Of a stretch of DNA of 64,000 nucleotides, positions 10,754 to 51,817 are shown one piece after another. The stretch is from positions 408,504-472,503 of the forward strand of contig JAIVFI010000041.1 in assembly GCA_025558095.1 (NCBI GenBank). The letters run 5' to 3'. The notes under the pieces were generated by a model. It was not told where the DNA came from and ran no database searches. It worked only from the letters and a program-made list of their open reading frames with translations. Position numbers and translations under genes: made by a program. The stretch comes from Hyaloraphidium curvatum SAG 235-1. Lineage: Eukaryota; Fungi; Monoblepharomycota. Numbering within the stretch: position 1 is the first letter of the stretch; each line of letters opens with the position of its first letter.

Positions 10754-12169
10754 TCACCCGGCGCACACCGTCTCGACCGTAAAGTACACCCCCGCCGCCC
10801 TGAGCACCGTCCAGAGCCCGAACGAGAGCGTCACGCACGTCACCGCCAGCGTCCTCACCACCGCCGCGTCCACCGTGAACCCCATGTACTTCTGGCGCGC
10901 CCCCTCCGTCTGCGCAAACAGCGCCAGCAGGGCGTCGTGGTCCGCCAGCGACCTCTCCACGCGGTCCGACGGCCGCCTCGAGCGGAGCACCAGCACGTCG
11001 GCGCGGGTGCGGCGGTACAGGGCCGCGACGTCCTCGATGCGGAGGTTGGCGGCGGCGATCGCCAGCAGCGAGGTGAAGTAGATCGCGAGCACGTCCAGGA
11101 AGATGAGCGGCATCCACAGCGGCACGCACCCCGCGGCCACTGCGTTCAGGAGCAGGCCGACGATGAGCGTGGAGAGGGCGCCGAGGAACTGCGCGCGCCC
11201 CTGGGAGATGTAGGCCAGCTGGGAGGGCCAGGATTCCGCGAGGCGGAAGTGCAGCTCCACGTAGGGCTCGTCGGCGGCGGCGACGGGGACGAGGTCCTCG
11301 GCCGCGGCGCGGCGGTGCCGGTCGACCATGTCCGAGAGGAGGACCACCATGGCACGGTGCTGCAGGCGGCCCGAAAGACCCAGGATGCGGACGCTCGGGG
11401 TGTTGTACGAGAAGGTGAAGTGCGACGGCAGGGTGTGCAGGAGCAGCAACGCCGCGTAGACGGCAAAGAGGAGGATGCTCCACCAGGTCGACCACATCAG
11501 GGGGGCGAACGTCACGCACAGCGTCCAAACAGACAGGGCGTGTCCGCCGAGGAGCACTGCGCTCTGCATCGCGGCGTCGATCGGGTACATGATCCAGGAG
11601 GAGCGGACGACGGAGCTGCAGTCCCCGCACGGGCAAAGCCGGTCCGCGGGGTCGTGCCGAACGAGCGGCAACACCTGGCTTCCCTTGTCCGAGAGCAGGT
11701 CCCGCCACCGGACGAGCTGCGCAAAGGGGTTCGCGTCCAGGGACGGCACGGCGGCGACGAACTTGTGGCTCGTCCAGACACCGAGCGCGCCCAGCCAGAA
11801 CACGGCCAGGAAAAAGACGGTGATGGCGACCGAAGCCGCGGCGATTTGCTTGGTGCCGAAGGCGCCCAGCCTCGCGTTGAAGACGAGGAGGGGCACCAGC
11901 ATAAGGTACCACGACAACACCGAGGCCGCGAGGCGCGCACCCGAGTTCCGGGCCAGGAGCGCGAAACAGTGCGACACGTAGATGCGCGAGAACGCCAGGG
12001 GGATGGGCAGGCCGCGGAGGCCGGCCAGCAGCGAAGCTTCGTCGAGCGGCGCGGAAGCGCCGGCGTAGTCGCCGTCCTCGGGCAGCAGCGCGCGGCGCTC
12101 GGCGGGGCACAGGGACAGCGGCGGCAGAGGCTGCTTGGCGCCCGCCGCCGGCGCGCCGTCGTCCGCCAT
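10754..12169 (-). CDS. 7-TM membrane protein, gustatory-receptor-like (7TMIC/GRL) candidate, paralog A, intronless
   Basis: About seven hydrophobic helices, no signal peptide, long loops after TM2 and TM4, HDPADRLCPCGDC motif, C-terminal YMGFTVD...TLSFGLWTVL...ETVC. The CDS is solid; the family is inferred. Confidence 0.7.
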   Translation of the reverse strand: MADDGAPAAGAKQPLPPLSLCPAERRALLPEDGDYAGASAPLDEASLLAGLRGLPIPLAFSRIYVSHCFALLARNSGARLAASVLSWYLMLVPLLVFNARLGAFGTKQIAAASVAITVFFLAVFWLGALGVWTSHKFVAAVPSLDANPFAQLVRWRDLLSDKGSQVLPLVRHDPADRLCPCGDCSSVVRSSWIMYPIDAAMQSAVLLGGHALSVWTLCVTFAPLMWSTWWSILLFAVYAALLLLHTLPSHFTFSYNTPSVRILGLSGRLQHRAMVVLLSDMVDRHRRAAAEDLVPVAAADEPYVELHFRLAESWPSQLAYISQGRAQFLGALSTLIVGLLLNAVAAGCVPLWMPLIFLDVLAIYFTSLLAIAAANLRIEDVAALYRRTRADVLVLRSRRPSDRVERSLADHDALLALFAQTEGARQKYMGFTVDAAVVRTLAVTCVTLSFGLWTVLRAAGVYFTVETVCAG

Positions 12170-12344
12170 CCGGGCGTGTGTTCTGGGGGAAGGTTTGTCT
12201 CCGGGCGAGATCTGCGCTTGGCTCAAGGCTTGGCTACTGTCTCCCGCCCAGTGGACCTTGCCAAGATCAATGCCATTCGATCTCCCTCGTCGCAAGTGCA
12301 CCGGGTCAAGTGAAGGCACCGCACGTCCAACGCCGGCGGAAGCG

Positions 12345-13106
12345 TCAGGCCACGACCCAGACCAGATCGACCGGAGACCTGTCGCCCGCCCCGTGCCTCA
12401 ATCCCCTCCCACCACACACATCACCGCCTTTCCTCGTCCCCGATGTAGTACGGCACCACATCTTCCGCAGCGATCCCGAACCTCCCGTCGTCTACCAAGT
12501 GCGAATTGGTCGCCTCGGGCACGACGGGCGGGGCCTTGCCCGCGTGCTCGGCCTCGCGCCACCGCAAGGCGCAGAGGCACCACCTGTCGCCGGGCTTGAG
12601 GCCGGGGAAGCGGAAGTCCGGGCGGGGGGTGATGAGCTGTTTCCGGGAAGGTTTCGGGTGGCCGATCCGAGGTCGTCGGGGGTAGGCAGCAAGCGCAACG
12701 CCGCGGGCAGGACGGGACTACGAGTCAGGGCCGGCAGGGCAGTAGCATCGCGGGCATGCAAACACGCACGTCGTTGCCGCGGGATCGCGTGAACTCGAGG
12801 AACTCCTTGGTCACCTCGGCGCAGACTGCTCGCCGGCGGGATGGCAGAACGGGGTCAGCTTGCCACGCTTCCCATGGGGGCCCGCGTCCGAGACCGACCG
12901 ACATGAGTACCGGAATCCTCGGGACCCGTCACGCACCGCCCGTCGCGGTAGAACCCGGTCAGCGGTGCGAGCGAGCAGATCTCCAGCGGGCGGCCGAGCA
13001 GGTTGCGGGGGGACGCCTGCGCGGGCATCGCGGGGAGCAGCAGCAGCAGCGCCGCGAGGAGGGCGGTGAGGGCGGAAAGAACAGAAGGCGGGGGCGGGCG
13101 GGGCAT
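12345..13106 (-). CDS. DUF2237-family protein with signal peptide, spliced
   Basis: NLLGRPLEIC..PLTGFYRDGRC.TGPEDSGTH|VCAEVTKEFLEFTRSRGND|FPGLKPGDRWCLCALRWREA..GKAPPV. The 3' end is approximate. Confidence 0.8.
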
Positions 13107-13198
13107 GGGGGCCGCGGTGAGGCCTTCCCGCGGTGTGCGGAGGATCGATCGGAGCGCGGTGGCTGCGGGCTGCGGGCGGGGGAATCAGCTTGCATCCC

Positions 13199-14871
13199 AT
13201 GGAGCCGCCCACGGAGCCGGCCTCCGCCGCGCCCCCGCCGGCGCTGCTGACGCGCGAAGAATGGCTGGCGTGTTTTCCGGCCGCGGCGCCGGCGACCGGC
13301 GGGCTCGGCACCCTCCCGGGTCCCCCCGACCCGGCCGCGGCACTGCGGGACGCGGCCCCGCTCACGCAGTCGTCGATGCTGCGTGCCCTCGCCCCTTGGC
13401 CTTCGATGCGTGCCGTGCTATCCGCCCAGTTCGCGACGGGCGCGCTGCACTTCGCGATAATGCCGGCACAGCTGTTGACGCATTTCTTCAACCTGGCCAT
13501 AATGGGCGCCATGTTCTGGTTTCTGGAGCAGGCAAATTTCGCTGGCTTCGGCCGCTCCAATGCCGTGGTGGGCGTCACCGCCGGGGTCGTCGTCAACGCG
13601 TCAGGGTTGCTGTCCTATCTCGTTTTCCTGGTCTCGCGCGAAGCCAGAATGGAGTATCTGAGCTGGTTTGAAGTGAAATCGCTCGATTACAACTATTGCG
13701 CCCAGGCTGTGAGGTGGAGCGAACTCTGCTCGGGCGTTTTGAAGCATGGGGAAATGGAGGACGGTGGCTGCCTGGGCTCCTTCTCCAAAGGCCGCCTGGT
13801 GGCTCACGACCCCGACGACAAGCTTTGCCCGTGCCCGGACGAACGTTGCGCCGGTCAGCTCCTTTGGCAGGCCGCTGTGGCGGCCGCGTCGACGGCCCTT
13901 GTCGTCACGACGGCGGCCGTTACCTCGATGGGGGTGTGCATGGTTTGGACTCCTTTCGTGACCCTGCGCTTGCAGTTTTGGTCGACCTGGTGGAGCGTTC
14001 TTTTGGCCGTCGTCTTTCGTGAGCTCCTGTGTAGCCGCGCTCCTTCCGCCGCACCCCCACTCATGAAGCCCCACGCAGTAGTGTCCATGGTCACCTACTT
14101 TGTGACGTCCTTAGCGCACAACCACATAACGCTGCCCCTGCTCCGCCTCACCCTCCGGATCCACCACCGGGCGATGCACCTGGCGCTGTCGGACCTCGTC
14201 GACGGCTACCGCGCCGTGCTGGAGGACTCCGCCGCGGTCCATCGCGGTTGCCTGGAGACCGCATCCGCGTACGCTTCCCTCTATGCTCGCATAAAGATCG
14301 AATGGCAGACCCGCCTCAGGGAGCTCCTCCGCGGTCGGGGGTTCGCGGCGACCGCGGCGGCGTCCCTGGTCGCAGCAGGAGCCATCAACATCGTGAGCGC
14401 GCGCCAACCCACGGCAGGCGATCGCCCCTTTCTGACCGCCCGATGACACCGCAGATCGGCGGCTCCTGCCTCCCCGCGTACATCCCCATCTGGCTCCTCC
14501 TCGGCTTCGTGTACGTCTTCGCCACAGACATGGCCGGCGTAGCCGTCAGCAACGCCCAGATCTCGGACATCACCGCGCTCTTCCGCGACGCCCGCGCGGC
14601 GCTGGGCGAGCTCTCCATGCTCGCCACGCTCCCCGGCACCTCCCCCGCCCCGCAGGCCGCAATCATAACCTCGATCGGCGAACACCAACGGCTGCTGGGC
14701 TCGTTCGCGGACGCGGACAGGTACAAGGTCCGTCTTTTCGGCTTCGCGATTGACTATTCGGGGGTCAGGGCGGTGCTGGCGACGCTCCTGACGATCGCGC
14801 TGGGGTTGTGGACCGTCCTTAGGAGCGCGGGGGTGTTTCTGACCCTGGAGACGGTGTGCCCGTCTCCATGA
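13199..14871 (+). CDS. 7-TM GRL-like candidate, paralog B
   Basis: Introns 14019-14078 and 14393-14454; HDPDDKLCPCPDERC, WSTWWS and RIHHRAM motifs; C-terminal LFGFAIDYSGVRAVLATLLTIALGLWTVLRSAG..ETVCP. Confidence 0.7.
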
Positions 14872-14986
14872 ACGATCCCCGAGGCTGCATCCGACGACAT
14901 GCGAGCGCAGACGACTGAGCAAACCAATCAAATCAGAGCAAATCAATACAATCACATTGGGGCGCACTGGCCTCCGAAACCCCGCA

Positions 14987-17022
14987 TCACCCCTCCCCGT
15001 CCACCATCGTCCAGCTCCCCTCCATGTCCGCCAGCGACCCCACCGTGCTGCTCGACAGCGTCCGCCCCCTGATCCTCCCCTCCTCGAGCGCCTCGGCGAG
15101 CGTGGGCGCGAACTCGGGGCTCCCGGGGAGCGACGCCACCGACGCCGCGAGGTCCCGCTCCGGGGGGCCGAACGACGAGAGGAGGCGGGAGAGGAGCGCG
15201 CCCATCCTCGACGTCCGCGGGGCGGGAACCTCCGCCGTCGGGAGCGGCAGCTGTCCTGCGTCCTCGTCGCCCGTGTCCACGGGGGCGAACGCGGGGGGCA
15301 GCTCCAGCCCGTCCTCCATGGCCTCGAGCACCTCCCCCGCCACCCTCTCGAGCTCCTCCACCCCCGGCTCCCCCTCCCCCTCCGCAGCCGGAACGCGCAT
15401 CTCCGGCCTGGGCGCCGGGCTGACCAGCACCCCCTCCCCCTCGTCCTCCTCCAGCCCCACGGCCTTCCTTCGTGCCACAGTGGCCGCCAGCGCCTCCCCG
15501 GCCCTCTCCAGTATAAAGTCCGCCGCCCGCTCCGCCCCGCCTTCCTCCCCCATCCGCCGACCCATTTCCCTGCACCGCCCGGCCATGCCCCCGTCGGCCA
15601 AGCACGCTCTCACGGCCTCGAGCAGCTCCCTGCCCCCCGCCCTCCGGACCCATTTGCCCACCCCCCTGGCCTCGCACTCGCGCGCCCACAGGTACTGGTC
15701 CCCGAAGAACGGCACCACGACCGAAGGTACCCCCGCGAGCAGCGCGGCCGACAGCGTGCCGGAACCGCCGTGGTGCACGGCGCACGAGAGGTGCGGGAAC
15801 AGCGCGCCGTGCGGCACCGAGGGGACCACGTGGAACGCCGGGGGCAGGGAGAGCAGCGGGTCCGCGGGGGCGGGGGGGTACGCCGCGCCCGGGGGGGAGC
15901 CCGGGGGTGGTGGTGTGGGGGTCGGGTGGGCCCAGCCTCGGGCGAGGACGACGCGCCAGTTGCCCGCCTGGGCGGCGTCGACGACCGCGCGGAGGAGGGC
16001 GGGGGGGTCGGGGGGCACGATGGAGCCGAAGCCGACGTAGATGATGGGATTTGAAGGGGTGGCGGGGGGTTGGAGGAAGGCGAGGAGGTCGGGGGGGAGG
16101 GAGTCGGTGGATGGGGCGGAGGGGATGGTGAAGGCGCCGCTGCGGGGAAACGTGGAGGAGGGACGATCAGATAAACGGAAACAATGAGCACGCCTGACAG
16201 GCCCCACCACACATCGATCTCGTCGCCCCAGTCGGGCGGCTTGGGCAGCAGGCTCGGCGAGTAGCCGTAAACGGTGGGGATCCCCTTGGCCGGGTAGCGC
16301 CACCCTGCCCCCCTCGCGACCTCCCTCCCCATCGCCCGCTGCTCCCTCGCGTGCATCGAGTTCGTCGGCAGCCCCCTCGCCCTCCTGAAGGCCGAGATCA
16401 GCGCGCGGGCGCCGAACTGCAGCGCCTCCTCGGCGGCCACGTGGCTAGCGAGGTTGTACGCGCGGCCGAGGTCCCGCGGGGGCACGAGGAACGGGTGCGG
16501 CACGTGAGCTGTGCGGTGCCACGGCATGAAGAAGGCGTGGGCGAGGGGCAGCCTCATTGCGTCGGCCAGATGGGTGGAGCACAGCAGCGAGGGCGCGGCG
16601 ACCAGCAGGTCCGGTGCGGCCGCCAGCGCCGCGGCATGTGCCGAGTCGAACAGCTCGGCGAGAAAGGCGAGCAGCGCGGGCGCGGCGGCGGGGAGGTGCA
16701 GCAGCCCGCGGGACAGCGTGGCCATCAGCGCGTGCGGCGAGCCCGAGAGGGGGAGGAAGGCGACGCCGTGCGCCTCGACGAAGGCGCGGTGGGCTTCGTG
16801 GCTCGCCAAAATCACTTGATATGTGGTCGACGGGTCCTTAAATCGGTCGTCCGGGGAGGCCCCCGCAGCGGACGCCGGAGACGGCTGCCCGGCAGTCCGG
16901 CCCCTCTCCGCGAACGCCAGCGCCAGCGCCACGAACGGCTGCACGTCGCCGCGCGACCCGATCGTCAGCAGCAGCACCCGCACCGCTCGGCCGCCGCCCG
17001 GGGGGGCTGGGGGCGGGGCCAT
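14987..17022 (-). CDS. Sterol 3-beta-glucosyltransferase-like (GT1/UGT51 family)
   Basis: TIGSRGDVQPFVAL, PKPPDWG, IYVGFGSI and VPHGALFP..VHHGGSGT..VPFFGDQ; intron near 16141-16207. Confidence 0.9.
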
Positions 17023-17156
17023 CGTGGTGGCGGGTCGCGCGTCACGCGCCACGGAAGGGGATGTCGGACATCGGGGGCCCCATTATCAGACGGACGGGGG
17101 ATCGGACGCTAACAATGGGACTGGGGAGATGCAAGATGGGAATATTGGCAGACGGA

Positions 17157-18320
17157 TCACAGCTTGGTGGTCTTGGCGGTCAGGAACCGGTTGGGCGAGT
17201 GGCCCATGACGGTCGACGCGCCGCCGTCCACGACGACCTCCACCCCCGTCCTGGAACGAAACCCGTCAGCACTCTCTGCAACCACACGGGTCAGCGGCAG
17301 CTCCCCACATGTAGGAGCTCTCGACCGACGCCAGGAACAGCACCGCCTGCGCGATCTCCTCGGGCTCGCCCCACCTGCCCATGGGGGAGCCCTCGGCGGC
17401 GCGGCCGAGGAACTTGTCGACGCTGGAGCGGGGCAGCGAGGGGTTGGCGAGGATGTAGTCGTGGATGTCGGTGGGGAAGAAGCCGGGCTGCGCAAACGGG
17501 GGAAACGGAGGGGTCAGAAGACCGGACCGCCATCGCGTGTCGCACCCCGGCAACTCCCACGTACGTGAATGGAGTTGCAGCGTATGTTGCGATGCGCCAG
17601 GTACGCCGCCGCGTGCTTGGTCATGCCCCTCACCGCCCACTTGGCCGCGTTGTACCCGAACCCGGACCCGGCCCCCTGCAGCGCCGCCGCCGACGACACG
17701 TTGACGATGCTCTTGCCCTCGGCGGCGGCGTTGCGCACCATCGACGCCGACCCCTCGCGGATGCCAAAGTACACGCCGTCCTGGTTGATGGCGAGCTGCT
17801 TGCGCCAGTCGGACGTGGGGTGCTTGTAGATGCCGTGCTGCGCGGGGTCGTGCGCCGAGGCGTAGCCAAAGTACTGGGAACGTGGGAGGGGAGCAAAGAA
17901 GAGGCGTCCGGAGGGTGAACGCAGGTCGGCCGACGACACGGGTGAGCACGCGTCGGACCGTGCCGGCCCCGGGGACAGACGCACCTCCTGCGCGTACCCC
18001 GCGTTGTTCACCAGCACGTCCAGCGGCCCGTACGTCCTCTCCGCGAACGCCACGGCGTCCTTCCACCCGCCCTCGCTGGTCACGTCCAGCGGGAACCACT
18101 CCGCCTCGCCGCCGTCCCTGCGGATCTCCTCGACGACCTCGCGGCCCGTGGCGGCCTGCGAGGGCAGGTCCGTGACGACCACGCGGGCGCCGTGCCGCGC
18201 GAGGAGGACGGCCGAGGTGCGCCCGAAGCCGCGCTTGGAGCCGGCGCCGGTGATGAGGACCACCCTCCCGAGCCCGGTGGAGGGGTTCAGCATGCGCTTG
18301 GCGGGGGGCGGGTACTGCAT
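17157..18320 (-). CDS. Short-chain dehydrogenase/reductase, multi-exon
   Basis: ITGAGSKRGFG, LVNNAG, IVNVSS, YNAAK, IRCNSIH|PG, and MGRWGEPEEIAQAVLFLAS...VDGG. Confidence 0.9.
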
Positions 18321-18812
18321 CGCGGCGGGGGAGTCGGAAGCGGACGCACGCCGGGACGGGGCGCGGACGGATGTGTGTGGGCGAGGTGTCTCCCGCGGGT
18401 GGCAAGGGAGTTCGCGGCGCCGCCATCGCCTCCACGGCCACTATCCGGCCCGCGGTGCATCTTCGCGAGGGTTGGGGTTCGCGAGCCGGAGAAGCAGGGT
18501 GAAGGGAACGTGCGAGGGGCCCGATGCGGGGGGACGGCAAGAGGGGAGAGGGAGATGCTGAGCCGCCTCGGAGCGATCCGACTTTGAGGCGCCGCCCCGC
18601 GAGGCCGGTTTCCATCCGGGCATAGCTCAGCGCTCTGAGATCCTCTCGCATTGCGATGCGGGGGACGGCCCTGATCCGTTTGCCGGGTGTGGGTCCCGAT
18701 GACCTGCGGGCGGCTGAAGTCAAGCGGCGCAAAGCCGGGCGGATAGCCGGGCGGCCGGGCGGTCTCCGTGCGTTTTCCCCGGCCCGCCTTCCCACCCCCC
18801 CAATCCCGCCAG

Positions 18813-19826
18813 ATGGCCGCGCCACGCGCCGCCCCTCTCCGCCTCCGCGCCGCGCTCCTCGCCGAGCTCCTCGCCCTCCTCCTCGCGGTGGCGCTGGCCG
18901 CCCCCGCCGCCGGCTCCGACTGGGACAAGCTCGAGATGGTCAACCGGCACTCGGTGGCCTGCAAGGTCCACGGCGACGCAGGCCACGACGTCCGCTGCGC
19001 AAGTGGAACTACGCGTTCCGGTACAAGCTCGCCCTGCACAAGGGCCCGATCGGCGCCGTGGGGACCAAGCCGGGCGAGAAGGAGGACGAGTATTCGGCAA
19101 AGGTGGCCGTGTACGGCGGCAGCATCTGCCACCTCCCCGGGGTCCCCATCCATGACCAAGGACCGTGAGTGGCGGGCGGCGCAGCCTGCGGGCATTGTCG
19201 CTCACGGAACACGGCTCGCTCCCCCAGAACATCAAGGAGGGCTGGCAAATCATCCGCACCGAGTCGTCCCCGATGTTGTTCGGCGTGCGCCCCCTCGAGG
19301 TGTTCATAAGCCAGTGCCAGGGCAGAAGGGTGGGCGGCGGGATACAGCGAAGCAGGCTGCCGATTGTCCGGTTCTCGATGTTGCGTGCGTCTTCGCGGAA
19401 GCCCAGGCGTAGGTAGTTTACCGAGATTGTCTTCCCCAGATTGCGGTGCTTTGCACTCGTGCGCAGGAGAAGCTAGGGAAGCTTGCCGCGGAGGCCGACA
19501 TCAAGTTCGTGCAGCGGCACGCGGACGACAAGGCCAAGGACGAGATGGCAGAGCTGCTCGGGGAGCCAGGCTATGCCGAGCATCCCGTGCTGCTCGCGCA
19601 CCTGGCGCAGTACTGGCAGGCGCTCGCAAAGAAGCGGATCAAGGCCTAGGGGCGCAAGCGCCCCGAGAAGAAGGAACCGGGCGGGTCGGGGAGGAAGGAT
19701 GTTTACTTCTGCAGCAAGTGCGGGTTCTGCTGGAGCGTGCTTGTGAGCAGGGAGAAGTTCGCCGCGCACCCGTGCGGCACGGCCTTCATGGAGTTCAAGG
19801 ACCGGAGGGGAACGAGTCAAAAGTAG
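18813..19826 (+). pseudogene. Signal-peptide protein of unknown function, apparently disrupted (frameshift near 19000, in-frame TAG 19647-19649)
   Basis: Hydrophobic leader and coding-like exons. After the TAG the frame continues for 58 codons containing YFCSKCGFC...HPC. Confidence 0.45.
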
Positions 19827-19869
19827 CGTGTCGTCTGTTTTTATCGACTCATCTATCTTGCCGCCGGTT

Positions 19870-20912: not shown

Positions 20913-21310
20913 GAATAGGGCAAAAGAGGGAAAAGAGCGGCGATTCCGAGAGCGGCGGCCAACCGGTGGATTTCGAGAGAGGGAGCCGGCGGGCCGACTA
21001 CTATGCCGCTGATGCAATTACTGCACTTCGCGCCCTACACGTCACGACCGACCCGCTAACGATGTGGCCTGCGAGTGAGGGAAGCTGAGGTCCTGAAAAG
21101 TGTGCGCCAACCGGCCCCGATCGTGTCCGTAATCGGGGCCGGCGCGCACCCGGCTCCTGAAGCCGGGGTCTCTAGCTCTACGTCTAAGTCCGAACGCAAG
21201 GTCTCCAAAGCCAGAGCGTCGCCCGCTCATAGGGTCCCCAAAGTCCCGCCGCCAAAATCCGAGGACGCCCCTCGGCTCACCCCACGCCACGCCGCCAGCC
21301 GCGGGGACCC

Positions 21311-31615: not shown

Positions 31616-31715
31616 CGGTCTGTGGGCAACAGGCGACATCGACTTTCGAAATACGGTCTGTTTCCTCTCTTCCTGTACAACAATTCCCGTCGATCCATCC
31701 GTGTCTCTCCTTGGG

Positions 31716-41700: not shown

Positions 41701-43091
41701 AGGAGAAGCTTGCGTCGCAGCACGCCAAGGTGTCCAAGATCGGGTTTCCGACCCGGCAGAGGCTCACCTCGGAGACGGACGCCGAGGCGCGCGCGCGGCT
41801 TGCGGGGGAGCTGGAGCGGTTCCTCTCGACGCTGCTTATCGACTCAAAGCTGTGCGAGTCGTTCGTGCTGCAGACCTTCCTGCAGCCGGAGCTGGTCAAC
41901 TTTGAGGAGGCGCTGGACAATGGCGGGTCGGAGCTCGAGCACCCCCTGGCGGTGTTTGCCGACGCCTTCCGCTCCGTCGGGACGGGCGTGACCGAGGCGG
42001 CGAGCCTCATAGGCCTGGGCGTCAACGAGGCCGTCTCCGCGGTGTCGTCGTTCGGCAGCGGCGCGGCGTCGGTCGTCGGCGCCGGCGTCGGTGCCGTTGG
42101 GTCGGGCGTCGTCGGCGCAGTCAAGGCACCCATCAGCGCCGCGGGTTCGCTGCTCAAGGGCATGACCTCCAGCAAGGCCGGGCAGTCCTCCCAGGAGGCC
42201 GCGCGCGGGATCGGCAAGCAGAACAGCTTCTCGAGCCAGCTCATGGGCACCTTTGGCGGCTTCACGGGCGCCGCCAACGGGCCCGCGGACCCCTTCTCGT
42301 CGCGGCCGGCGAGCAATTCGTCGTCGACGGTGCCCTCGCCGTCGCGGACGCCCACCGTGGTGCCGGCATCGCAGGCCACGGCGATGGAGCAGGCACTCGC
42401 GCCGGCGGGGTCGGGGTCGGGCGCATCGACGCCGTCCCGCTCGACGGCCGAGTACGTGCGGTCGTCGGGGAGCATCGGCGACAAGCCGCCCGAGGACATG
42501 TACAACGTGGACCCGGACCTCGTGCTGGACCTCGCCTTTTCGCTGCTCGAGGAGGTGTTCGACGTCGCCGCCGTGAGGCAGACGTCGCTCAACATCATCA
42601 AGTCGGTGCTCCGCCAGACGCACCGCGAGACGATCCGGATGGCAGCGAGTAGGCTCATCTATGCCGTCGCGCACGACGACTCGGTCGCCGCCCAAATCCA
42701 GGGCATCCTCGCGCGGTTTTGGCCCGACGGCATCTTCTACGCGCACAACCCCAACTTCGTCCCGCCACCCGTGCGGACACCAGAGCAGCGCGAGGCGACC
42801 AAGCTCGAGGCCAAGCGGCTGCTCATGCAGGACTCGGACCCGTTCGGGATCATGCTCACCCTCGACCGCCTCGTTGGGCGCTACGCCCGCGTGATGGGGC
42901 TCATCCGGCTCTTCAACTGCCTGCAGTCGGACGAGGGGCTGCTCAACAAGGGGCTGATCTGCGCGGTGCTCGAGGTAGTGGCCAAGGCGCTCCTGGTAGG
43001 GGTGGAGGAGGTGCGCGAGGCGGAAGTGGTCGAAAGACCAGATCGCGCATACGGCGCAAAGCAGGCCAAGGGGGCGGACATGGCATTGTAG
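38724..43091 (+). CDS. Mdm1/SNX13-14-25-like sorting nexin (TM-PXA-C2-RGS-PX-Nexin_C)
   Basis: VRDFIRSWW and LADPDYFN (PXA); LLGFLLDLE..IFSAHF (RGS); ITRRWSDF..IGFP (PX); FWPDG..RTPEQR..LNKGL (Nexin_C); plus a C2-like segment. Confidence 0.85.
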
Positions 43092-43239
43092 CGGGCATGT
43101 GCTGAACATCGTTGATTGCATCATCCAACTGTTAGGTCGCGGCGAGGCGGAGTCGTCGGGGGTTCTCCCGCCACGGACTCCAGAACCGCCTGCATGCCGC
43201 AAACACAGCACCCGTCCACATTCCGCTTCAAGCGACTCG

Positions 43240-44543
43240 ATGCGCGCCGCCCACCTGCCTGCGCTGCTCCTCGCCCTCGCGGCTCTGGTGTCTGTTTGGG
43301 GAACTGCTGCCGCCGGGCTCGGGGCGCGGCGGCCCCGCGGGGACGATGTGGCGGAGCGTGACCGGGACGCGGACGCGGTGGCGGACGCCGCGGGAGGGTT
43401 GAGCGCTGCCGAAGCCGTCGGGATCGAGCGCAGGCAGCTCGGCTCACGGCGGAGCACAACACGGCGGCGGAAGACGACGACGAAGCGGCGAAGGACGACG
43501 ACGCGAAGGCGGTCCTCGACCAGGAAGCGCAAGACCACAACAAGGAGGCGAAGGACGACAACGAGGCGCAGGTCATCAGCACGCAGGAGCTCTTCAAGCA
43601 CGCTCGCTGCTCCGACCAGCTCGACGGTCTCGGTCACCCCGACGACCTCGGCCACCTCCACGCCCACCTGCCCGCCCGGCTTCCGCCGCGGCAAGTCCTT
43701 CGACCGCCTCCTCCAGATCTGGCTCGAGAACGAGGACGACGTCGACGTCTCCCTCGACCCGGACTTTGCCCACCTCGCCTCGCTGGGCATCAAGCTCTCG
43801 GACTACCACGGCCTCGCGCACCCCTCCCACCCTAACTACGTCGGCTCCGTCGCGGGGTTCCTCGCCGTGCACGACAGCACCCCCGTCAACCTCACCCTGC
43901 CCAACATCGCGGACCTGCTCGACGCCGGCGGCGTGCCCTGGGGCGTGTTCGCCGAGGGGTTCCCGGGGAACTGCTCGCTCGCGGGCACCTCCGGGCGTTA
44001 CGCGAGGAGGCACAACCCCCTGATCGAGTTCACTTCGATCCACGGGAACGCGTCGCGGTGCGCGCGGATCGAGCAAGCGCCCGCGCTGGATGCCCGGATC
44101 GCAGCGGGGACGGTGCCGCAGTGGGCCATGTACGTGCCCGACCTGGACAACGACGGGCACGACACGTCCATCTCGTTCGCGGGCAAGTGGGTCAGGGGGT
44201 TCCTCGAGGCCAGGGAGGCATGGCTCAACAGCACCAACACTCTCGTGCTCCTCGTTTTCGGTCCGTCCCTCGGCACGCACCGAGCTTGCCCCGCGACTAA
44301 CCTACCACCCCCATGACTGCAGACGAAGGCCGCATCTCCCCCAACAACCACGTCTTTGCCCTCCTCCTCGGCCCCCTCATCCCGCCCGCCCTCCGCGGCA
44401 CCTCGGACGCCGCGCGGTACGACCACTACTCCATCATGTCGACCGCGGAGAACAACTGGGATTTGGGGAACCTGGGGAGGAACGATACGGGGGCGCCGGT
44501 GTTCGGGACGGGGTTGGTTAGGAGGTTCGATGCGTGCGCGTAG
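43240..44543 (+). CDS. Secreted acid phosphatase, phosphoesterase family
   Basis: Signal peptide; IWLENED, HPSHPNY, RRHNP, DGHD and YDHYS motifs; intron 44261-44321. Confidence 0.88.
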
Positions 44544-44669
44544 CAATGCCGGGGGCGGATGGCAGGCCCGATGACGTAGGGAGATGGCAGGTAACGTAGG
44601 CGACGCTCGGGGACGAATAGCCGTTTGCGTCCAACAATCCATGATGAAGCCTCGACGACCAACACTTTT

Positions 44670-46252
44670 TCAGCAGGGGAGCCCGCGGTACCACTCCGAC
44701 GCCCTCACCGCCCTCCACGCCTCGGCCCTATCCTCCGGCAGCGGCGCCATCAGCCCCTTCGCACACTCCACCGCCCCCACCTTTGCCAGCGCCGCGAGGT
44801 CCCCCTTGGGCAGCACGCCCTTCTCGCTCCACTGCTTCCACCCGTGTTCCGACGGCAGCGCGGCGGAGAAGGGGCGCTTGGCGAAGAGGGCGTATAGGAG
44901 GAGGCCGAGGGAGAAGAGATCCGCGAGGACGGGGTCGTACGGTTCGTCTGTTCGCGGGGTTCCGGGTCAGCATGCGCGATGGTCCGAGCGGGGCGCCGAC
45001 GAACCGGTGAACAGCTCGGGTGCCATCCAGGACACCGTGCCCGACCTCCCCAGGCACCACTTGGGCCCGCCGGGCGGGCACCCGCCGCAGGTGACGCCCT
45101 CGGGGTGCCCGCGCCCGGCGCAGACGGCCGAGCCGAAATCGGCGAGCTTGGCGGCGCCGTCCTGCAGGAGCACGTTGTGCGCCTTGATGTCGCGGTGGGC
45201 GAAGCCAAAGGCGTGCTGAGCACGGGGTGTCGCGGTGAGTGATCCAGGGCGGCGATAGGGCGGGCACGACACACCATGTGGTTCAGCGCCTCGGCGACGC
45301 CCTTCCACGCCCTCAGCTTCTGCGCCGCAGGCCTGTCCCCGCCCAACCACGCGGCCAGGTCCCCGCCGGAGCAGTACTCCAGCACGAGGATGAACCGCCC
45401 GCGGCGGTCGTCGAAGAGCATCTCGAAGGTGCGGCAGACGTTGGGGTGCGGCGCGGAGGAGGCCGCGAGCCATTCGCGGAGGCAGCGGAGGGCGTATGAC
45501 TCGAGGGTCGGGTAGTGGGAGCTGGCAAAGGCGGGGAGGCAATCAGGGCCACTTGCGGGAGACATCACGCAGGGGGACCGACTGGTTGCGCGAGATGGAC
45601 TTGCCCAGCAGCCGCACGGTCTTGTCCCCGGCAGGATTCGGGATCCCCGGCCTGCAGCGGACGGCAAACACCCTGCCCTGCATCGTTGAATCAGCGGCGT
45701 CGCGTCGAATCAATAACGACGTCAGTGCCGAGGACCCGCGAAGGCGGCGCCTCCACCCACCCCTCCCCCGCGCTTCACGTCGCCAGCGCCCCTGGCGCGG
45801 ACCTCGTACCGCCGCTCGAATGTCGCCTCCGGGTGGACGGACATCCTGCCCTGCGGGTCCAGGGTGGCCGACACTCCTATGGAAAGATCCCGGAGGCGCA
45901 GGGTTGCGTAGGTTGGCCCGGGCGGCGGCGAGTCCTCCGAGGCTGAGGCGGGCTCGTCGGTTGCGGCGCCGGGCACCGTCAGGAGCGAGGCGGACGGCGT
46001 GGCGCTGAGCGGCGAGTCTCCGGGCGACAGCGGGGATACCGCGGGTCCGGCGGGGGGCCGCGCGGCGTCGCCCGCCGGGGGTCGCGAATCGAACGAGAGC
46101 GCGCGCTGCGGCGACAGCGGCGACGCGGCGGGCCCGGCGGCGGCGGCGGGCGACGGGGCGCGGGCCGCCTTTGCGTCGCGCGGGGCGTCGCCGCCGGGCA
46201 GCCCGAGCGCAGACATCGAGAGGCGACGGAACGCCTGCGTGAACCCGGGCAT
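44670..46252 (-). CDS. Ser/Thr protein kinase, multi-exon
   Basis: HPNV, LEYCSGGDL, HRDIKAHN, LADFG, WMAPE and DLFSLG motifs. Confidence 0.88.
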
Positions 46253-47231
46253 GGCCGAGCGTCGCGATGGGGAGTATGCCGGTGCCGTCGACGTCCCCGG
46301 CGAGGGGCAGAAGGCTCGAAATCGAAAGTGTTTAGGACGGTGGGGCGCAGCGGCGGGCAACCGGCTTCTGGACTTCCAGGGCCGAGTCCCGCCGAAGGTT
46401 CCTGTCGGCCCTTTGCTCCCCGCGATCGGTGAGACGGGGCGATCGGCAACGTTCGGAAAGAGGGCCGCGGATTTGATCCACCCTCGCTCCCCGCCCGCCC
46501 TGCTCCCGCCGCGATGCCAGGTGCGTCTCCCGCAAGGCCCGACGAGGCACCGCCACGGCCTGCATATGCAGCAAGAACTTCGAGAACGAAGCTAGTGCAT
46601 CTCTGCAAACGGTCCACTCCTTGGGCAATGGCAGCGTATTGTCGAGGTTGAATGGCGAGGCGATCTTTCGAAGGCCGAAACCCCTCGCCGTCACGGGAGC
46701 GGGACGACGCGCATCCCTGCGAGAGCCGTTTGCTGTCTCGGGCACCTGTCTCTGAACGGCCGCAGCGAGGCGGCCGCAGCAGGGAGAGCAGTGATCACTG
46801 ACCGCTCAAGCTCTCGCGGTGCCCGTGGCGCCCACGCCACCGCGCGGCAGCCCTTGACGATACATGTTGCTCTCTCGGCATCATCGGCCCTGGCAGGTGC
46901 ACAGTACCTGCCCCATTGGGACGAATCCGCGACACGATCACGGGCGGACCAAGGGGCCGGAACCGGAGTCACTTCTCTACTCCCGGGGCTGGAGCCGCCC
47001 GCCTGCCCGACGATGCGTGCGGCGCTCGCCCTTGCGCATCCGTCGACGTCGGCTCCGTACGACTTTCCGTGGCATGTCCGCAGATGGTCGAGAGCGCGCA
47101 ACTGCCTGTAGCTGACGGGCATGGTCCGCAGAGGCCAGTTCTCCCGACCCGACCCCCGATCCAGACCGCACGCAGCAATCGGAACCACTTGCACCGCAAT
47201 CGGCCCCCCGGCTGCCCGCGACGGTCCCGCC

Positions 47232-49355
47232 ATGGCGGCCGGCCCTCGCTCCGGCGCGGACGCCAGTTCGGCCGGCAGTTCGGCACCGCGGCTGGCCTGC
47301 CTCGTGTGCAGCGTGATCCACAAGAAGTGCGCGTACGATTCCGAGAGCGGGCCGTGCCAGCGGTGTGCCCGGCTGGGCAAGTTCTGCGAGCCGCAGACGG
47401 GCGTCGTGGTCGTCCGCCGGGCGTCTTCCGGCGGCGTTTCGCGGGGGCAGCGCCCGGCGGGCGCGAAGGGGGGAGCCGGCCGGCCGGGGAAACCGCCGCT
47501 GCCGACCCCGGCGTGCCGCGCCCCGAACCCGCGTCCCCACGCCGGCCCGGCCTTTCCGGCAGTCGTCGACCTCGCCCGAGTCGTCGGAGGCCCGCGCACG
47601 TCGAGCCCGGGGCCGGAACGCGCGGGCTCGCCGTCGGGCTTCGACTTCCCCCAGCACGCCCGAATCGCCGTGCCCCGCAGCCCCCCCACGGGACCGGACG
47701 TGCCGCCCGAGGTGCTCTTTGCCTGCGTCCAGCACTGGTGGGCCCTAACGGCTCCGACGCTCAACATCCTCCACCGCGAGGCCTTCGACGCCGCATTCCT
47801 CTCCCCTCCCTCACCCATCTACGGCGCCCACAAACCCGCCGCGCTGATGTCGGCGCTGGCGGCCGAGGGCGTCCTGCGCGTCGAGCTGCCGGGATACTCG
47901 CCCGACGCCCGGTTCCGGCTCTCGCGGACGTTCGCCAGGACGGCGAGGGACCTCCTTCTGGCGGGCTACTTTGGCAGGGAGCCGGGGAACCGCCCCGTGA
48001 CGGACCTCGAGGCGATGCAGGCGTGCATGGTGCTGAACCGCTACCTGCTCGGCGCCGCCAACGGCGTCGACGCGGCCCTGGTCATTGGCAAGGCCTGGGA
48101 GATCTTTGGCGCGCGGTTCGCGCGCGAGCTGGCCTGCGGCGGCCGTCCCGGGCCCGGCGATCCGTGGGGATGGCTGAGGCACGAGCTTGTCTGCCGCGCC
48201 TACATCAGCATGTCGTTCTCCGAGGGCAGCAGGTCCCTGCACATGGACGAGCCGCTCGATTTCGACCGCGGCGTGTCTCCGCTGCGCCGCATCCCGTGCC
48301 ACGAGGTGTTTTTCGGCATGCCGTCGGCCGTGCAGGCTTTCCACCTCGCGAACCTGCGGCCGCCGCTCGTGGTGGACCCCTCCCCTTTCTACGCGGACGT
48401 GCCGGACCCGGCGGCGTGTGCCGAGGTCGCGGTGAGGCTGGTCGCACCCATCGCCGACCTCGGCGCCAGCCGCTTCGCCGCCCTCTACCTTTTCAGCCTG
48501 CTGCAGAGGCTGGTCGTCCGCCTCCGGGCGCAAGCCAGGGCCTCGGGGCTGGACCTTATCGCGCTGGCATCGCAGGATCCCATGGTGGACACCCCGCCGC
48601 AACGCGCCTTCCGCGCGGGATCCGAGGCCGTCCAGGCCTGCACCGCCGCCGTCGTCGACGCCCTGCCCCCGACCATCGGCCCCGCACTCGCCGCCGGCGA
48701 CCCGCGCCCCTTGCTCGCCGAGGCAATCAACCTCTTCTCCTCCTTCGAGCACGGCAACGCCTTCCTCGGCATCTTCATCTGCATGAACACCCTCCCGTGC
48801 TGGCTCTGGCTCCGCGGCGGCGAAGGCGCCGTCCCCGACGCCGCCTTCTTCGCCTCGGACCCGCTCGGCACGGTGCTCGAGTGCTCCGTGCTCGCGGGCA
48901 AGCTGATGGAGGCGCAGATGGTCGCCGGCGGGGTGCCGTCCGTGCACACGTTCGCCTTCACCGCCGCCATCAAGCTGTGCGCGCTGTACCTGGCAGTCGC
49001 GGGGACCGTCGCGTCGGGCGGGGACGCGGCGGCTCGCGATGCCGCCGTGAGGGAGGCCATGGTGAGCTTCCGGTACGCGGAGGAGGTCATGGCCACCTAC
49101 CCGATTGCGTGGCGCGCGCTGGCGCCGCGGATGCACGCGATGCTGGCCGAGTCGGGGCTCTTCCTGCTCGATAGGCCCGGGGTGGGCGGGACGCCGGGGG
49201 TCCGGGGGCAGTCGCCGCCCGCGCCCGTTGTGGTGGGGACCGTCAAGGGGATGCTGCCGTTCGCGTCGGGGGCGCTGACGCCGGATCCCCTGATCTCGAT
49301 GCTGCATTCGGACGGGGAGGCGCAGGAGGGGGACATGGCCGCTGGCGAGGAGTGA
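47232..49355 (+). CDS. Zn(II)2Cys6 transcription factor (paralog 4), intronless
   Basis: CLVCSVIHKKC...CQRCARLGKFC; HREAFDAAF, TDLEAMQ and IPCHE motifs. Confidence 0.88.
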   Translation: MAAGPRSGADASSAGSSAPRLACLVCSVIHKKCAYDSESGPCQRCARLGKFCEPQTGVVVVRRASSGGVSRGQRPAGAKGGAGRPGKPPLPTPACRAPNPRPHAGPAFPAVVDLARVVGGPRTSSPGPERAGSPSGFDFPQHARIAVPRSPPTGPDVPPEVLFACVQHWWALTAPTLNILHREAFDAAFLSPPSPIYGAHKPAALMSALAAEGVLRVELPGYSPDARFRLSRTFARTARDLLLAGYFGREPGNRPVTDLEAMQACMVLNRYLLGAANGVDAALVIGKAWEIFGARFARELACGGRPGPGDPWGWLRHELVCRAYISMSFSEGSRSLHMDEPLDFDRGVSPLRRIPCHEVFFGMPSAVQAFHLANLRPPLVVDPSPFYADVPDPAACAEVAVRLVAPIADLGASRFAALYLFSLLQRLVVRLRAQARASGLDLIALASQDPMVDTPPQRAFRAGSEAVQACTAAVVDALPPTIGPALAAGDPRPLLAEAINLFSSFEHGNAFLGIFICMNTLPCWLWLRGGEGAVPDAAFFASDPLGTVLECSVLAGKLMEAQMVAGGVPSVHTFAFTAAIKLCALYLAVAGTVASGGDAAARDAAVREAMVSFRYAEEVMATYPIAWRALAPRMHAMLAESGLFLLDRPGVGGTPGVRGQSPPAPVVVGTVKGMLPFASGALTPDPLISMLHSDGEAQEGDMAAGEE

Positions 49356-50213
49356 TTTGGGGAGAGGCGTGTTGGCCACGAATACCATGTCCGAGATCGA
49401 TATCCTTTTCATTGCTCGCCGTGTCCCTTCGGTCGGCCGGCCCTGGCCCCCATTCCCCCAACCCATTCTTGCCGGTGATCTCACAGCGCACGGACTTCCC
49501 CAATCAGTCCTTCTATCTCCCTCGCCTTGAATGAATGAATATACGACAAGCATGGGGAAGGTTCGGAGAGGTGCGGCCTCCGCTGGCCGGAGCGCGGATT
49601 CTCAGGAACCCGGACTTGCCGCCGTGTGCCGTCATCCCCGCCCGAGATCCCGCGTCTGCGGCGGGATCAAAGTCCCTGTCCCCAGCGTAAGTAAGTCGGC
49701 AAGGCGTTTGAAAAGAGCAGTTGGGTTTTGGTGACGCGGCGGGGCCCAGAGGCACGAGTGCGTTTGCCACCGATGACGTGGGACCGGTCCAGGCTCCATG
49801 GCGCCCTTGCGTGCCCTTGAGCATTTCGGACGCGGTCTGCCCGTCTCGAGCAACCTGCGACTAATCGCATTATCCATGGGGGTCTCGAGCTGTCCGTCCG
49901 ATGTGCTGGCAGACCCGGGTGCGCTTGCGGAGAAATCTCGCTCCTCCCGACAGTCCCTTGGAGGTGATCCCGAAGGCCGTGGTGGGGCCGGAAGCGCCCC
50001 GGACCTTTCGGGAATGAATCAAGAGACCAGTTTAGTGTCCGTCGTGTCCCCATCTGTGGGAAGCTGTGTCGCGAAGAGGCGGGAATTCCCATCGGTTCCT
50101 TCCATTTCTCGGTTCAGCCAGGGTGGGAAGGCGGCGTCCGGCCGCGCACCTGCCCTCGCACGGGCCCCGCACGCGCCTCGCCGCACGCCCCCCTCTGCCT
50201 CTGCCTGCCCGCC

Positions 50214-51817
50214 ATGGAGCCCGCCCCCCCGCCGCCGCCGCTGCCCGCCAGCCTGAGCGCCGCCGAGTGGGCGGCCGTGTTCCCTTCGCCCCCCGTCGAG
50301 GTCAGCGTGTTCGCCCACGGGCCGCCCCCCGATCCGGCCGCGGCCGAGCGCGCGTCGAACCCGCTCACGCGCTACGCGCTCCTGCGGGAGGCGGCCGCGT
50401 CGCCGCTGCTGCTGGGGATCTCGGACCTCAATTTCAAGCTGCAGCCGTGGGGCCGCCGCATCCCGCTGCGCTCGGCGCTCTCCTACGCGGCGCAGTTCGC
50501 GGTGCTGGGCACGACCTGGGCACTGAGAGGAGACCGCTTCGGCACGCCGCAGATGGCCGCCGCAACCGCCTCAAACGTGCTCGAGTTCCTGGGCGCCGCC
50601 GTCGTGCCCCTTGTCGCCTTCCGCAACTCCGCAGCGTTTCCCGCCATGGACAACCTGGACACCCACGCGCTGGCGGGATTCACCCGCTGGTCGCAGCTGG
50701 TCCGCGCCTCGGCCGACCGCGGGATCGCCGCGGGCGACGACAAGGACGGCGAGGACGGATCCGAGGCGACCCTGACCCAGTCGCGCCACCGCTGGGGCCT
50801 GCTCACGCACCGCGACGGCGACAAGCTCTGCCCGTGCCCGAAACCGGAGTGCATGGGCAAGGTCGGCCAGGCCTACGCCAACCTGCGCCTGGTGCAGATC
50901 ATCCTGGCCCTGAGCGTGATGTGCGGGTACGGGTTCTTCCGGATGTACACCCCGCTCGTCGGGCTCGCCGACGTCTTCTGGACCAACGCCGGCTTCATCG
51001 TCTTGGGCGTCTTCGCATGTGAGTCTCGCCCCCGCTGCCGTCCACATCGCCTGACGACGCTGCGTCCCTCTTTGCTGCCTCCAATCCAGTGTTGGCCCTG
51101 GTTGACGAGCACTTCCCCACCATTCTCGGCCTTGTGCAGTGGACGAACGTCCGCCTCATCGAGCTCTCCAGGCGACTGCAGCGCCGCGCGATGCTTCTCG
51201 CCCTCGACTCGTTCCTGGCACGGTTCCGCTACGCCATCGAGCACGGCGAGGACCCGAAGCTCGAGCTGGACGGCGACGAGCTCTACGTGCACCTGCACGA
51301 GTGCCTGCTTGGCACCTGGCTGCAGCGCGCCCCCCTCCTCGCCGGCCTCGTCGGCGGCCTCTTTGGCCTCGCCCTCGTCGAGGTCATCGTGATCATCATC
51401 AATGCCTTCGCCGGCTCCTGCATCCCCCTCTACACCGTCCTCACCCTTTGCTACGTGCTCTTCCTTCTCCTCACCCACCTCGTCGACGAGAGCGTCGGCA
51501 ACTCGCAGATCTCGGACGTAAGGAACCTCTACCACGACGCGCGCCGCGAGATCCGGGCCCTTGCCGTGCGCGGCGAGTCGGGCCCGCGGTCCCCCTCCAC
51601 GATCGGCGTGCTGGCGCGGCTGCGGTCGCACGACGCGCTGCTGGCGAGCTTCCTCGAGGTGGAGAGGTGCCGCACGCGGCTGGCGGGCTTCGTGATCGAC
51701 TACACCTTTGCGAGGAACTTTGTCGTCACGCTGGTGACGGTCGCGTTCGGTCTGTGGACGATTTTGAGGTACGCGGGGCTCCATATGACCGCCGAGTCCG
51801 TGTGCCCGTACTACTAG
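50214..51817 (+). CDS. 7-TM GRL-like candidate, paralog C
   Basis: Intron 51019-51089; HRDGDKLCPCPKPEC, RLQRRAM and YVHLH motifs; C-terminal LAGFVIDYTFARNFVVTLVTVAFGLWTILR..ESVCP. Confidence 0.7.

Follow-up and report, generated by a model that had tools for sequence, protein, structure and literature searches.

Do three divergent genes close to a chromosome end of the fungus Hyaloraphidium curvatum encode members of the 7TMIC superfamily (insect OR/Orco/GR, animal GRL, plant DUF3537), and could they act as ligand-gated channels in chemical sensing, as a first-pass annotation proposed? The analysis covered a 64-kb stretch (the window, positions 408504-472503 of a contig that itself stops at 472,503) and extended to the family genome-wide. 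The reading of the three genes as a 7TMIC-type family is supported, and none of the three outcomes named beforehand as refuting it came up. We give a probability of about 0.6 to the explanation that they belong to an H. curvatum family with the 7TMIC fold whose members are ligand-gated, chemical-sensing channels.

Three subtelomeric genes of a large family

Searching all six frames of the window with a profile of 36 paralogs recovered exactly three family genes (g1, g2 and g3; Table 1), in the places where three divergent paralogs had been annotated. All three are intact family members, with pairwise identities of 24-38% when compared piece by piece (g2 and g3 were compared and searched as separate exon pieces). 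The match of g1 to the family profile has an E-value of 4e-146, and RNA-derived contigs cover positions 10400-11454 and 11572-12137 of its locus with no joint. The three loci stand as first placed, with g1 a single exon, but g2 needed a correction, as it has two introns instead of one; as both are spliced out in RNA-derived contigs, its protein is 516 aa long. If read through, the first of these introns would be a 19-20 aa insertion relative to the profile. The g3 intron is a prediction from GT..AG ends and contiguous profile coordinates, and its profile position (253|254) and phase are identical to those of g2 intron 1. The RNA contigs show that g1 and g2 are transcribed and that g2 is spliced.

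Table 1. Features of the window (positions are counted from its first nucleotide)
Feature	Position	Strand	Description
g1	10754..12169	-	One exon, 471 aa; CDS 10757-12169, stop 10754-10756; single ORF
g1 loop motif	11618..11656	-	H172-x3-D176-x2-C179-P-C181-x2-C184; TM2-TM3 loop, predicted cytoplasmic side
g1 C-terminal segment	10763..10882	-	G430-F-T-V-D kink, TM7b (435-458) and C-tail to invariant C469
g2	13199-14871	+	Three exons, 516 aa
g2 exon 1	13199..14018	+	273 codons + 1 nt; profile match; RNA-contig joint 14018>14079
g2 loop motif	13805-13849	+	HDPDDKLCPCPDERC; in exon 1
g2 intron 1	14019..14078	+	60 nt, GT..AG, phase 1; skipped in RNA-derived contig
g2 exon 2	14079..14392	+	RNA contig piece 14079-14392
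g2 intron 2	14393..14454	+	62 nt, GT..AG, phase 0; skipped in RNA contig
g2 exon 3	14455..14871	+	138 codons + stop; end of TM5 to C-terminus; profile positions 360-489, E 3e-45; RNA contig 14455-15200
g2 GFAID...C	14740-14859	+	In exon 3
g3	50214-51817	+	One predicted intron, 510 aa
g3 exon 1	50214..51018	+	268 codons + 1 nt; profile positions 7-253, E 7e-56
g3 loop motif	50808-50852	+	HRDGDKLCPCPKPEC; in exon 1
g3 predicted intron	51019..51089	+	71 nt, GTGAGT..CAG, phase 1
g3 exon 2	51090..51817	+	Stop 51815-51817; TM4 to C-terminus; profile positions 254-488, E 2e-70
g3 GFVID...C	51686-51805	+	In exon 2
Telomere array	63862..64000	+	(TTAGG) x 27.8; contig end

The locus is subtelomeric, as had been proposed, because the window terminates in a (TTAGG)n array, lying about 12 kb from g3 and about 50 kb from g1 and g2; genome-wide, family genes are biased towards chromosome ends. 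A truncated retrotransposon gag ORF adjoins the telomere, and the genome is GC-rich, with long chance ORFs in all frames. The host belongs to the Monoblepharomycota and is an early-diverging fungus outside the Dikarya, which makes moot an earlier remark on the absence of 7TMIC homologues from Dikarya.

The first-pass annotation had spoken of an expanded repertoire, and that wording proves too modest: the family comprises about 400-460 genes and is specific to H. curvatum as far as sampled. Protein searches gave 466 representatives (50% identity clustering, E ≤ 1e-3), and a DNA pattern for the loop motif matched the genome 312 times, versus 2 for a control. All 20 representatives sampled are H. 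curvatum singletons, with no non-Hyaloraphidium protein among the 20, and GenBank labels the sampled family proteins hypothetical. When word-indexed protein searches were run with g1 by itself, with a family profile or with residues 405-471 of the C-terminal region, nothing but the query and one to three paralogs came back; since low-complexity words swamped the candidate lists, these searches are uninformative on taxonomic range. A literature search found no paper pairing Hyaloraphidium with 'gustatory'.

The family is under purifying selection, dN/dS being 0.20-0.54 in the 14 closest paralog pairs. Stop codons are absent from 92 of 95 genome matches, and functional-looking residues are invariant across copies only 23-58% identical. 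High copy number, chromosome-end bias, the gag ORF beside the telomere and the long chance ORFs of a GC-rich genome might be taken as signs of decaying repeats or transposon-carried ORFs piled up in subtelomeres, but RNA contigs over g1 and g2 (spliced in the latter), the dN/dS values, the near-absence of stop codons, the invariant residues, a confidently predicted fold (see below) and the absence of a transposon domain from the proteins in Pfam searches make such an origin extremely improbable. The spliced RNA contigs, the dN/dS values and the 92 of 95 open matches led us to reject the pseudogene or transposon reading of g1-g3.

Topology, signatures and predicted fold

Family-averaged hydropathy delimits seven hydrophobic segments (approximately 78-98, 108-132, 196-220, 227-248, 325-346, 351-372 and 436-458), which coincide with the helices of an AF2 model of g1 (pLDDT 92.3, pTM 0.89). 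Seven helices, long loops after TM2 and TM4 and a very short TM5-TM6 linker had been described from the sequence; mean loop lengths of 8/72/6/77/4/65 residues, with a 14-aa tail, bear this out, adding a long loop after TM6 and putting the linker at 4 residues. Intracellular loops (means of 72, 77 and 65 residues) are longer than extracellular ones (8, 6 and 4), and in the 36 paralogs the three long loops carry 24.4 K+R, as against 1.75 for the short loops and the C-tail together. By the positive-inside rule this charge distribution predicts an N-terminus inside and a C-terminus outside, inverted relative to GPCRs, in line with the N-in topology first suggested.

In the g1 model, the TM4, TM5 and TM6 helices (229-256+260-291, 302-322+325-346 and 352-397) each run 23-43 residues past their hydrophobic part, and the extensions recur in a second model. 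TM7 is split: a helix that is not hydrophobic (402-419) is followed by a break (420-434) around the invariant G430 and by a hydrophobic helix (435-458), with helices 467-489 and 501-524 as the counterparts in the second model. The predicted architecture is that published for 7TMICs, namely seven TMs, N-in topology, inner loops longer than the outer ones, extended TM4-6 and a split TM7.

The motifs reported in the first-pass annotation (ANLRI/SNAQI/GNSQI, GFTVD/GFAID/GFVID and T..T...GLWT(V/I)L, for g1/g2/g3) were all located. Among the TMs, conservation is highest in TM7b (1.47 bits versus about 2.6 for TM1-6), whose polar stripe, T440/T444/T447/G451/S-T454, lies between R439 and R457 (g1 numbering). 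The animal TM7 motif, (T/S)Yhhhhh(Q/K/E)(F/L/M), which is diagnostic but not definitive (PMC7746228), occurs in the last 60 residues of none of 176 full-length members, and its replacement was thus correctly noted; the invariant T447 is the sole residue corresponding to it. T-x2-T-x3-(G/A), usually followed by L-W, is found in 136 of the 176. The family also has a loop signature, H-x3-D-x2-C-x-C-x(2-4)-C, whose His and three Cys are invariant in 36/36 paralogs and whose Asp is present in 35/36, the same positions being at least 90% conserved in 100 further members. An invariant Cys pair lies on the outer side, one in the TM5-TM6 turn and one in the C-tail. The His/Cys3 cytoplasmic loop is probably a metal (Zn) site, and the outer Cys pair probably forms a disulfide.

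When the g1 monomer model was searched with Foldseek against 350,542 PDB chains, ranks 1-14 were all insect GRs or ORs; the E-values were weak, none better than 6e-3, and global TM-scores against PDB chains were 0.2-0.4. Among 48,161 chains searched exhaustively with VIA, all eight 7TMIC representatives took ranks 1-8, and they alone matched over the full chain length (311-349 of 319-407 residues), whereas matches to unrelated chains spanned 92-196 residues; a ranking of this type with an independent family member and an independent alignment had the same outcome. The predicted fold resembles the insect smell and taste receptor channels more than any other solved structure. In the ESM Atlas, shape led to unnamed cnidarian and echinoderm clusters (TM 0.58-0.67 over 350-369 residues) and features to a DUF3537 'Gustatory receptor' cluster (score 0.90, 180/256 features in common, 5 hits); the top feature matches were unnamed ciliate clusters and Tmp39, and the recognition score was under the mark, so that this result is a lead only.

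Sequence comparison gave no such signal. Pfam, including 7tm_7, 7tm_6 and DUF3537, returned no match at E ≤ 1 for g1 or for the separate exons of g2 and g3, nor at E ≤ 10 for 36 paralogs, and searches of PDB sequences, using either g1 or the family profile, gave chance-level matches only; these searches likewise linked the proteins to no unrelated known family. The PF08395 and PF12056 HMMs had no match in the genome, but with control genomes silent too this blank carries no information. An unrelated, lineage-specific seven-helix family whose long helices align best with OR/GR by chance would be compatible with these blank searches, with the 7-12% identity of the structural alignments with 7TMICs and with the weak Foldseek E-values. 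Such convergence seems improbable, given that 7TMIC representatives take the first eight ranks as the sole whole-chain matches, that the outcome was repeated, that rare traits beyond helix count are held in common (inverted topology, extended TM4-6, split TM7) and that language-model features point independently to the DUF3537 cluster. We consider a 7TMIC fold very likely on the strength of the models, and homology to 7TMICs, beyond fold resemblance, may be inferred.

Comparison with known 7TMICs

Insect ORs and GRs (MhOR5 7LIC, AaegOR10 8V00/8V02, AgamOR28 8V3C/D, Orco 6C70, BmGr9 8VC1, DmGr43a 8JM9 and DmGr64a 8JME; Pfam 7tm_6, PF02949, and 7tm_7, PF08395) share with the H. curvatum family the seven TMs in N-in/C-out orientation, loops that are long on the inner and short on the outer side, TM4-6 extending into the cytoplasm, a TM7 divided into 7a and 7b, highest conservation in TM7 and a big, quickly diverging repertoire in tandem arrays. 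Unlike them, the H. curvatum family, known here from genes and models in a fungal host, has no detectable sequence similarity and no (T/S)Yhhhhh(Q/K/E)(F/L/M) motif, and it adds the His/Cys3 motif, in a TM2-TM3 loop of 63-72 aa, and the invariant Cys pair.

The chytrid proteins SpunGRL1 and SpalGRL1 (Spizellomyces) were named 7TMICs from topology and predicted structure (Benton et al. 2020, PMC7746228); they conserve 1/4 TM7 motif positions and are encoded by one GRL gene per genome (PMC7746228). The H. curvatum family resembles them in its early-diverging fungal host and in keeping only the Thr of the TM7 motif, but not in gene number (about 400-460 versus one), the two being compared by description. 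DUF3537 proteins of plants and algae (PF12056; Class A of the eukaryotic 7TMICs), with 4-12 genes per plant (PMC7746228), lie closer to the query in language-model feature space than any other named family and have the same predicted architecture according to the literature (PMC7746228; Himmel et al. 2023 preprint), whereas no H. curvatum member among the 36 has a Pfam match to PF12056. PHTF-like Class-B eukaryotic 7TMICs are described as having a long IL1 (Himmel et al. 2023 preprint); the H. curvatum IL1 of 63-72 aa, which bears the signature motif, is likened to it by description only.

Possible function and significance

In the most likely mechanism, four subunits would assemble via a cytoplasmic 'anchor' made of the long TM4, TM5 and TM6 extensions and TM7a, the conserved TM7b would line a central cation pore with its Thr/Ser/Gly face, and the variable TM1-TM6 bundle would form a ligand pocket differing among paralogs, the repertoire being a panel of ligand-gated channels for external chemicals. 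That the proteins are channels seems somewhat probable, and that they make up a chemosensory repertoire is evenly balanced. Against this explanation we count the missing sequence-level link to known 7TMIC families (blank Pfam and PDB profile searches), the animal TM7 motif in 0/176 members, the weak Foldseek E-values and the low global TM-scores. H. curvatum is described as having no flagellated stage, and classical chemotaxis is therefore not an obvious use.

The same fold, probably with common ancestry, could instead serve membrane scaffolds or regulators, transporters, variable surface molecules for self/non-self or parasite recognition, or internal-membrane proteins, the role suggested for PHTF-type 7TMICs. 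It is the fold alone that has been established, and a common fold is not proof of function; a complex prediction with four copies of g1 residues 227-471, run without alignment, scored 0.53, 0.15 and 0.00 (median 0.15, mark 0.32) and gave no verdict for or against a tetramer. The missing animal pore motif, the longer TM2-TM3 loop with its His/Cys3 motif (a long IL1 being described for PHTF-like proteins) and the chromosome-end bias and fast divergence, which also suit contingency or recognition gene families, agree with such roles. We nevertheless regard them as unlikely, if worth serious consideration, because conservation follows the pattern of OR/GR channels (it peaks by a wide margin in TM7b, with its hydroxyl/glycine face, while the TM1-6 bundle varies), neither TM7a nor any of the anchor-forming extensions is missing, and the functionally characterised fold members among the matches (OR, Orco, GR) are all ligand-gated cation channels, judging by structure titles.

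Whether H. curvatum has independently built about 400-460 7TMIC ligand-gated channels, a set larger than the Drosophila ORs and GRs combined and the largest known outside animals, marked by a His/Cys3 metal site on the cytoplasmic side, a disulfide on the outer side and a TM7b lined with Thr, is a proposition to which we give even odds. If true, it would reveal a fungal system for chemosensing or recognition that had gone unrecognised, and massive 7TMIC expansion would not be an animal invention; with several hundred genes in a fungal genome of 32 Mb, the repertoire would far exceed any other outside animals. The family is a deep natural alignment for structural and coevolution studies of the 7TMIC fold, and its hundreds of compact genes, many of them intron-less (g1 included), are suited to heterologous expression. 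It raises the question of what the planktonic, saprotrophic H. curvatum might sense with it.

Family genes in the window and the chromosome end

Searching the window in all six frames with a profile of 36 full-length paralogs (alignment A1) yields exactly three family genes (g1, g2 and g3), in the places where the first-pass annotation had put three divergent paralogs, and every motif it quoted is present in them. Pairwise identity among the three is 24-38%, compared piece by piece; the exons of g2 and g3 were searched one by one. The gene locations proposed earlier hold, with the g2 gene model corrected to two introns instead of one; both are skipped in the contigs of the public run X1, which gives a protein of 516 aa. 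This run also skips two introns of the minus-strand gene neighbouring g1 and g2, and splicing of that kind indicates that it is RNA-derived; it covers g1 without any joint. The neighbouring gene, lying between g1 and g2, is itself transcribed and spliced, its first exon matching DUF2237 (PF09996, 1e-10), a mostly bacterial family. G+C content is 63-73% throughout the window, and real genes are overlain by long chance ORFs in each of the six frames, so that the length of an ORF does not by itself indicate a gene in the H. curvatum genome.

Intron 1 of g2 and the predicted intron of g3 interrupt the same profile position (253/254, in TM4) in the same phase 1, in genes only about 27-38% identical. 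As this intron is missing from g1 and many other paralogs, its gain or loss could serve as a candidate marker for subfamilies.

Features of the window (window positions)
Feature	Position	Strand	Description
g1	10754-12169	minus	single ORF, 471 aa
DUF2237-type gene	12240-13122	minus	introns 12637-12769 and 12826-12898
g2	13199-14871	plus	two introns, protein 516 aa
g2 intron 1	14019-14078	plus	60 nt, GT..AG, skipped in X1 contigs
g2 intron 2	14393-14454	plus	62 nt, GT..AG, skipped in X1 contigs
g3	50214-51817	plus	one predicted intron
g3 intron (predicted)	51019-51089	plus	GTGAGT..CAG, phase 1
gag-like retrotransposon ORF	63612-63866	plus	Pfam DUF4939 (5e-10), Retrotrans_gag (3e-5), Ty3_capsid (2e-4)
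telomere repeat	63862-64000		27.8 perfect TTAGG units

The subtelomeric setting claimed for these genes is literally correct: the window is the final 64 kb of its contig (C41) and terminates in a perfect telomere array, the distance to it being about 12 kb for g3 and about 50 kb for g1 and g2. The usual telomere repeat in fungi is TTAGGG, the H. curvatum end carrying instead a 5-nt unit. The gag-like ORF runs directly into this array, as though capping of the chromosome end had taken place inside a Ty3-type element.

Predicted architecture and fold

Family-averaged hydropathy gives seven hydrophobic segments. Mean loop lengths are 72, 77 and 65 residues on the N-terminal side and 8, 6 and 4 residues on the other, which also bears a 14-residue tail (a long IL1 has been noted in Class-B 7TMIC proteins; 2023 preprint). 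Lysines and arginines number 24.4 on the N-terminal side vs 1.75 on the other, and from this excess the N-terminus is predicted to lie inside, in agreement with the seven-segment, inverted topology first proposed. In the g1 model, TM4 (229-291), TM5 (302-346) and TM6 (352-397) form helices of 45-63 residues that extend far past their hydrophobic parts, and the last "TM" consists of two parts, a non-hydrophobic helix (402-419, TM7a) and a hydrophobic helix (435-458, TM7b), with a break around the invariant G430 of the GF.VD motif between them. Compared with the structural criteria for 7TMICs (PMC9998090), the superfamily that includes insect ORs, Orco and GRs, the GRLs of animals and the DUF3537 proteins of plants, the predicted architecture of the family agrees on each of these points. 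For tetramer assembly, three predictions with four copies of g1 residues 227-471 scored 0.53, 0.15 and 0.00, on both sides of the mark of 0.32.

The AlphaFold2 model of g1 built on A1 has a mean pLDDT of 92.3 and a pTM of 0.89. When it was searched with Foldseek against 350,542 PDB chains, ranks 1-14 went without exception to GRs or ORs of insects (BmGr9, Gr43a, Gr64a, MhOR5, AaegOR10), the kind of fold that the first-pass annotation had anticipated, with weak E-values (6e-3 and above) and low TM-scores (0.2-0.4). A replicate was made with P0083, a member that shares 23% identity with g1 and no more than 27% with any A1 sequence and was modelled on an alignment (A2) of 100 other representatives, none of them 90% or more identical to an A1 member. 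Its model (pLDDT 90.3, pTM 0.89) has AgamOR28, Gr64a and BmGr9 as its top three matches. AlphaFold2 was trained on structures that predate the release of Orco 6C70, and recall of the g1 model from a template is therefore unlikely. The database entry dates that release to 2018-08-22. Two ESM Atlas searches provide leads in the same direction: by shape, unnamed cnidarian and echinoderm clusters (TM 0.58-0.67 over 350-369 residues) and, by features, matches that include, with a score of 0.90, a DUF3537 "Gustatory receptor" cluster.

At the sequence level, Pfam gave no match for g1 or for the exon pieces of g2 and g3, nor for any of the 36 paralogs even at E<=10, and PDB sequences gave none with g1 or the family profile. 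The Pfam 7tm_7 and DUF3537 models found nothing in the H. curvatum genome, control genomes being equally silent. Judging from the models, we put the probability that the family has the 7TMIC fold at about 0.9; a helical bundle that came to resemble these receptors by convergence seems unlikely.

Size, distribution and selection

A six-frame genome search with g1, limited to scoring 90 of its 678 first-look candidates, returned at least 95 matches at at least 89 loci. Against 1.84 billion representatives of 50% identity clusters, the A1 profile recovers 466 proteins at E<=1e-3, a number that falls to 419 at 1e-10 and to 299 at 1e-30. All 20 representatives sampled are single-member H. curvatum clusters; they bear the name "hypothetical protein DFJ74DRAFT_...", as do the closest database proteins, also of H. 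curvatum. An independent count comes from a DNA pattern for H-x3-D-x2-C-P-C, which occurs 312 times in the genome vs 2 for the reversed control; with this peptide form present in 27/36 A1 members and 106/153 representatives, some 400-450 genes are expected. The expansion suggested from three genes is supported, and the evidence best fits a very large, lineage-specific family of proteins with the 7TMIC fold.

H. curvatum belongs to the Monoblepharomycota (Fungi, chytridiomyceta; database taxonomy), an early-diverging lineage outside Dikarya. Fungal 7TMICs have been described as restricted to Chytridiomycota and Blastocladiomycota (2023 preprint). Spizellomyces punctatus and S. palustris are reported to have one GRL apiece, in which only one TM7 motif position is conserved (Benton et al. 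2020). No paper pairing Hyaloraphidium with "gustatory" was found in the searchable literature.

Family members occur in tandem clusters, such as the six motif matches at 704-737 kb of contig C1. Dense arrays, with 5-6 motif matches on both strands per ~33-41 kb, lie at C1:704002-736677, C5:784007-816948 and C12:691306-732429. On the 11 largest contigs, 85% of motif matches are within 300 kb of a contig end vs 60% expected (n=85, p=2e-6), and 83% of similarity loci are within 200 kb vs 54% expected (n=89). The family leans towards contig ends, a bias rather than a strict subtelomeric restriction.

So many copies might be non-functional repeats, which is very improbable, being contradicted by the RNA contigs over g1 and g2, by stop codons in only 3/95 genome matches of g1, and by dN/dS values of 0.20-0.54 in the 14 closest pairs. 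The family members are living genes, diverging fast under purifying selection.

Family-specific residues and possible roles

Conservation is far higher in TM7b than in any other segment (1.47 bits vs ~2.6 for TM1-TM6). One face of this helix carries T440, T444, the invariant T447, G451 and S/T454, flanked on either side by R439 and R457 (g1 numbering), a putative pore lining as far as the sequences indicate. The animal TM7 motif, (T/S)Yhhhhh(Q/K/E)(F/L/M), is found in none of 176 full-length members, and 136 of them carry T-x2-T-x3-(G/A), in line with the replacement noticed at first. Another invariant residue is N375, at the inner end of TM6.

In the TM2-TM3 loop, H172, C179, C181 and C184 are invariant and D176 nearly so in A1, the same positions being at least 90% conserved in A2. 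This loop is well predicted in the g1 model, without secondary structure, and lies on the predicted cytoplasmic side; its four metal-type ligands suggest a candidate Zn site. C348, in the 4-residue TM5-TM6 turn, and C469, in the C-terminal tail, are likewise invariant. The g1 model has short strands at 348-350 and 462-464, with counterparts in the P0083 model; these features suggest a candidate outer disulfide.

All the structural matches that have been characterised are ligand-gated cation channels, and the family shares the conservation pattern of ORs and GRs, with TM7b conserved and the bundle variable. By this analogy the proteins would most likely assemble as tetrameric ligand-gated channels, serving as a chemosensory panel. 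That they are channels is rather probable; for a chemosensory repertoire the chances are about even. The same fold put to a different role is doubtful, while clearly likelier than convergence. As a family of 7TMIC-fold proteins, it is relevant to work on chemoreceptor evolution and fungal sensing.
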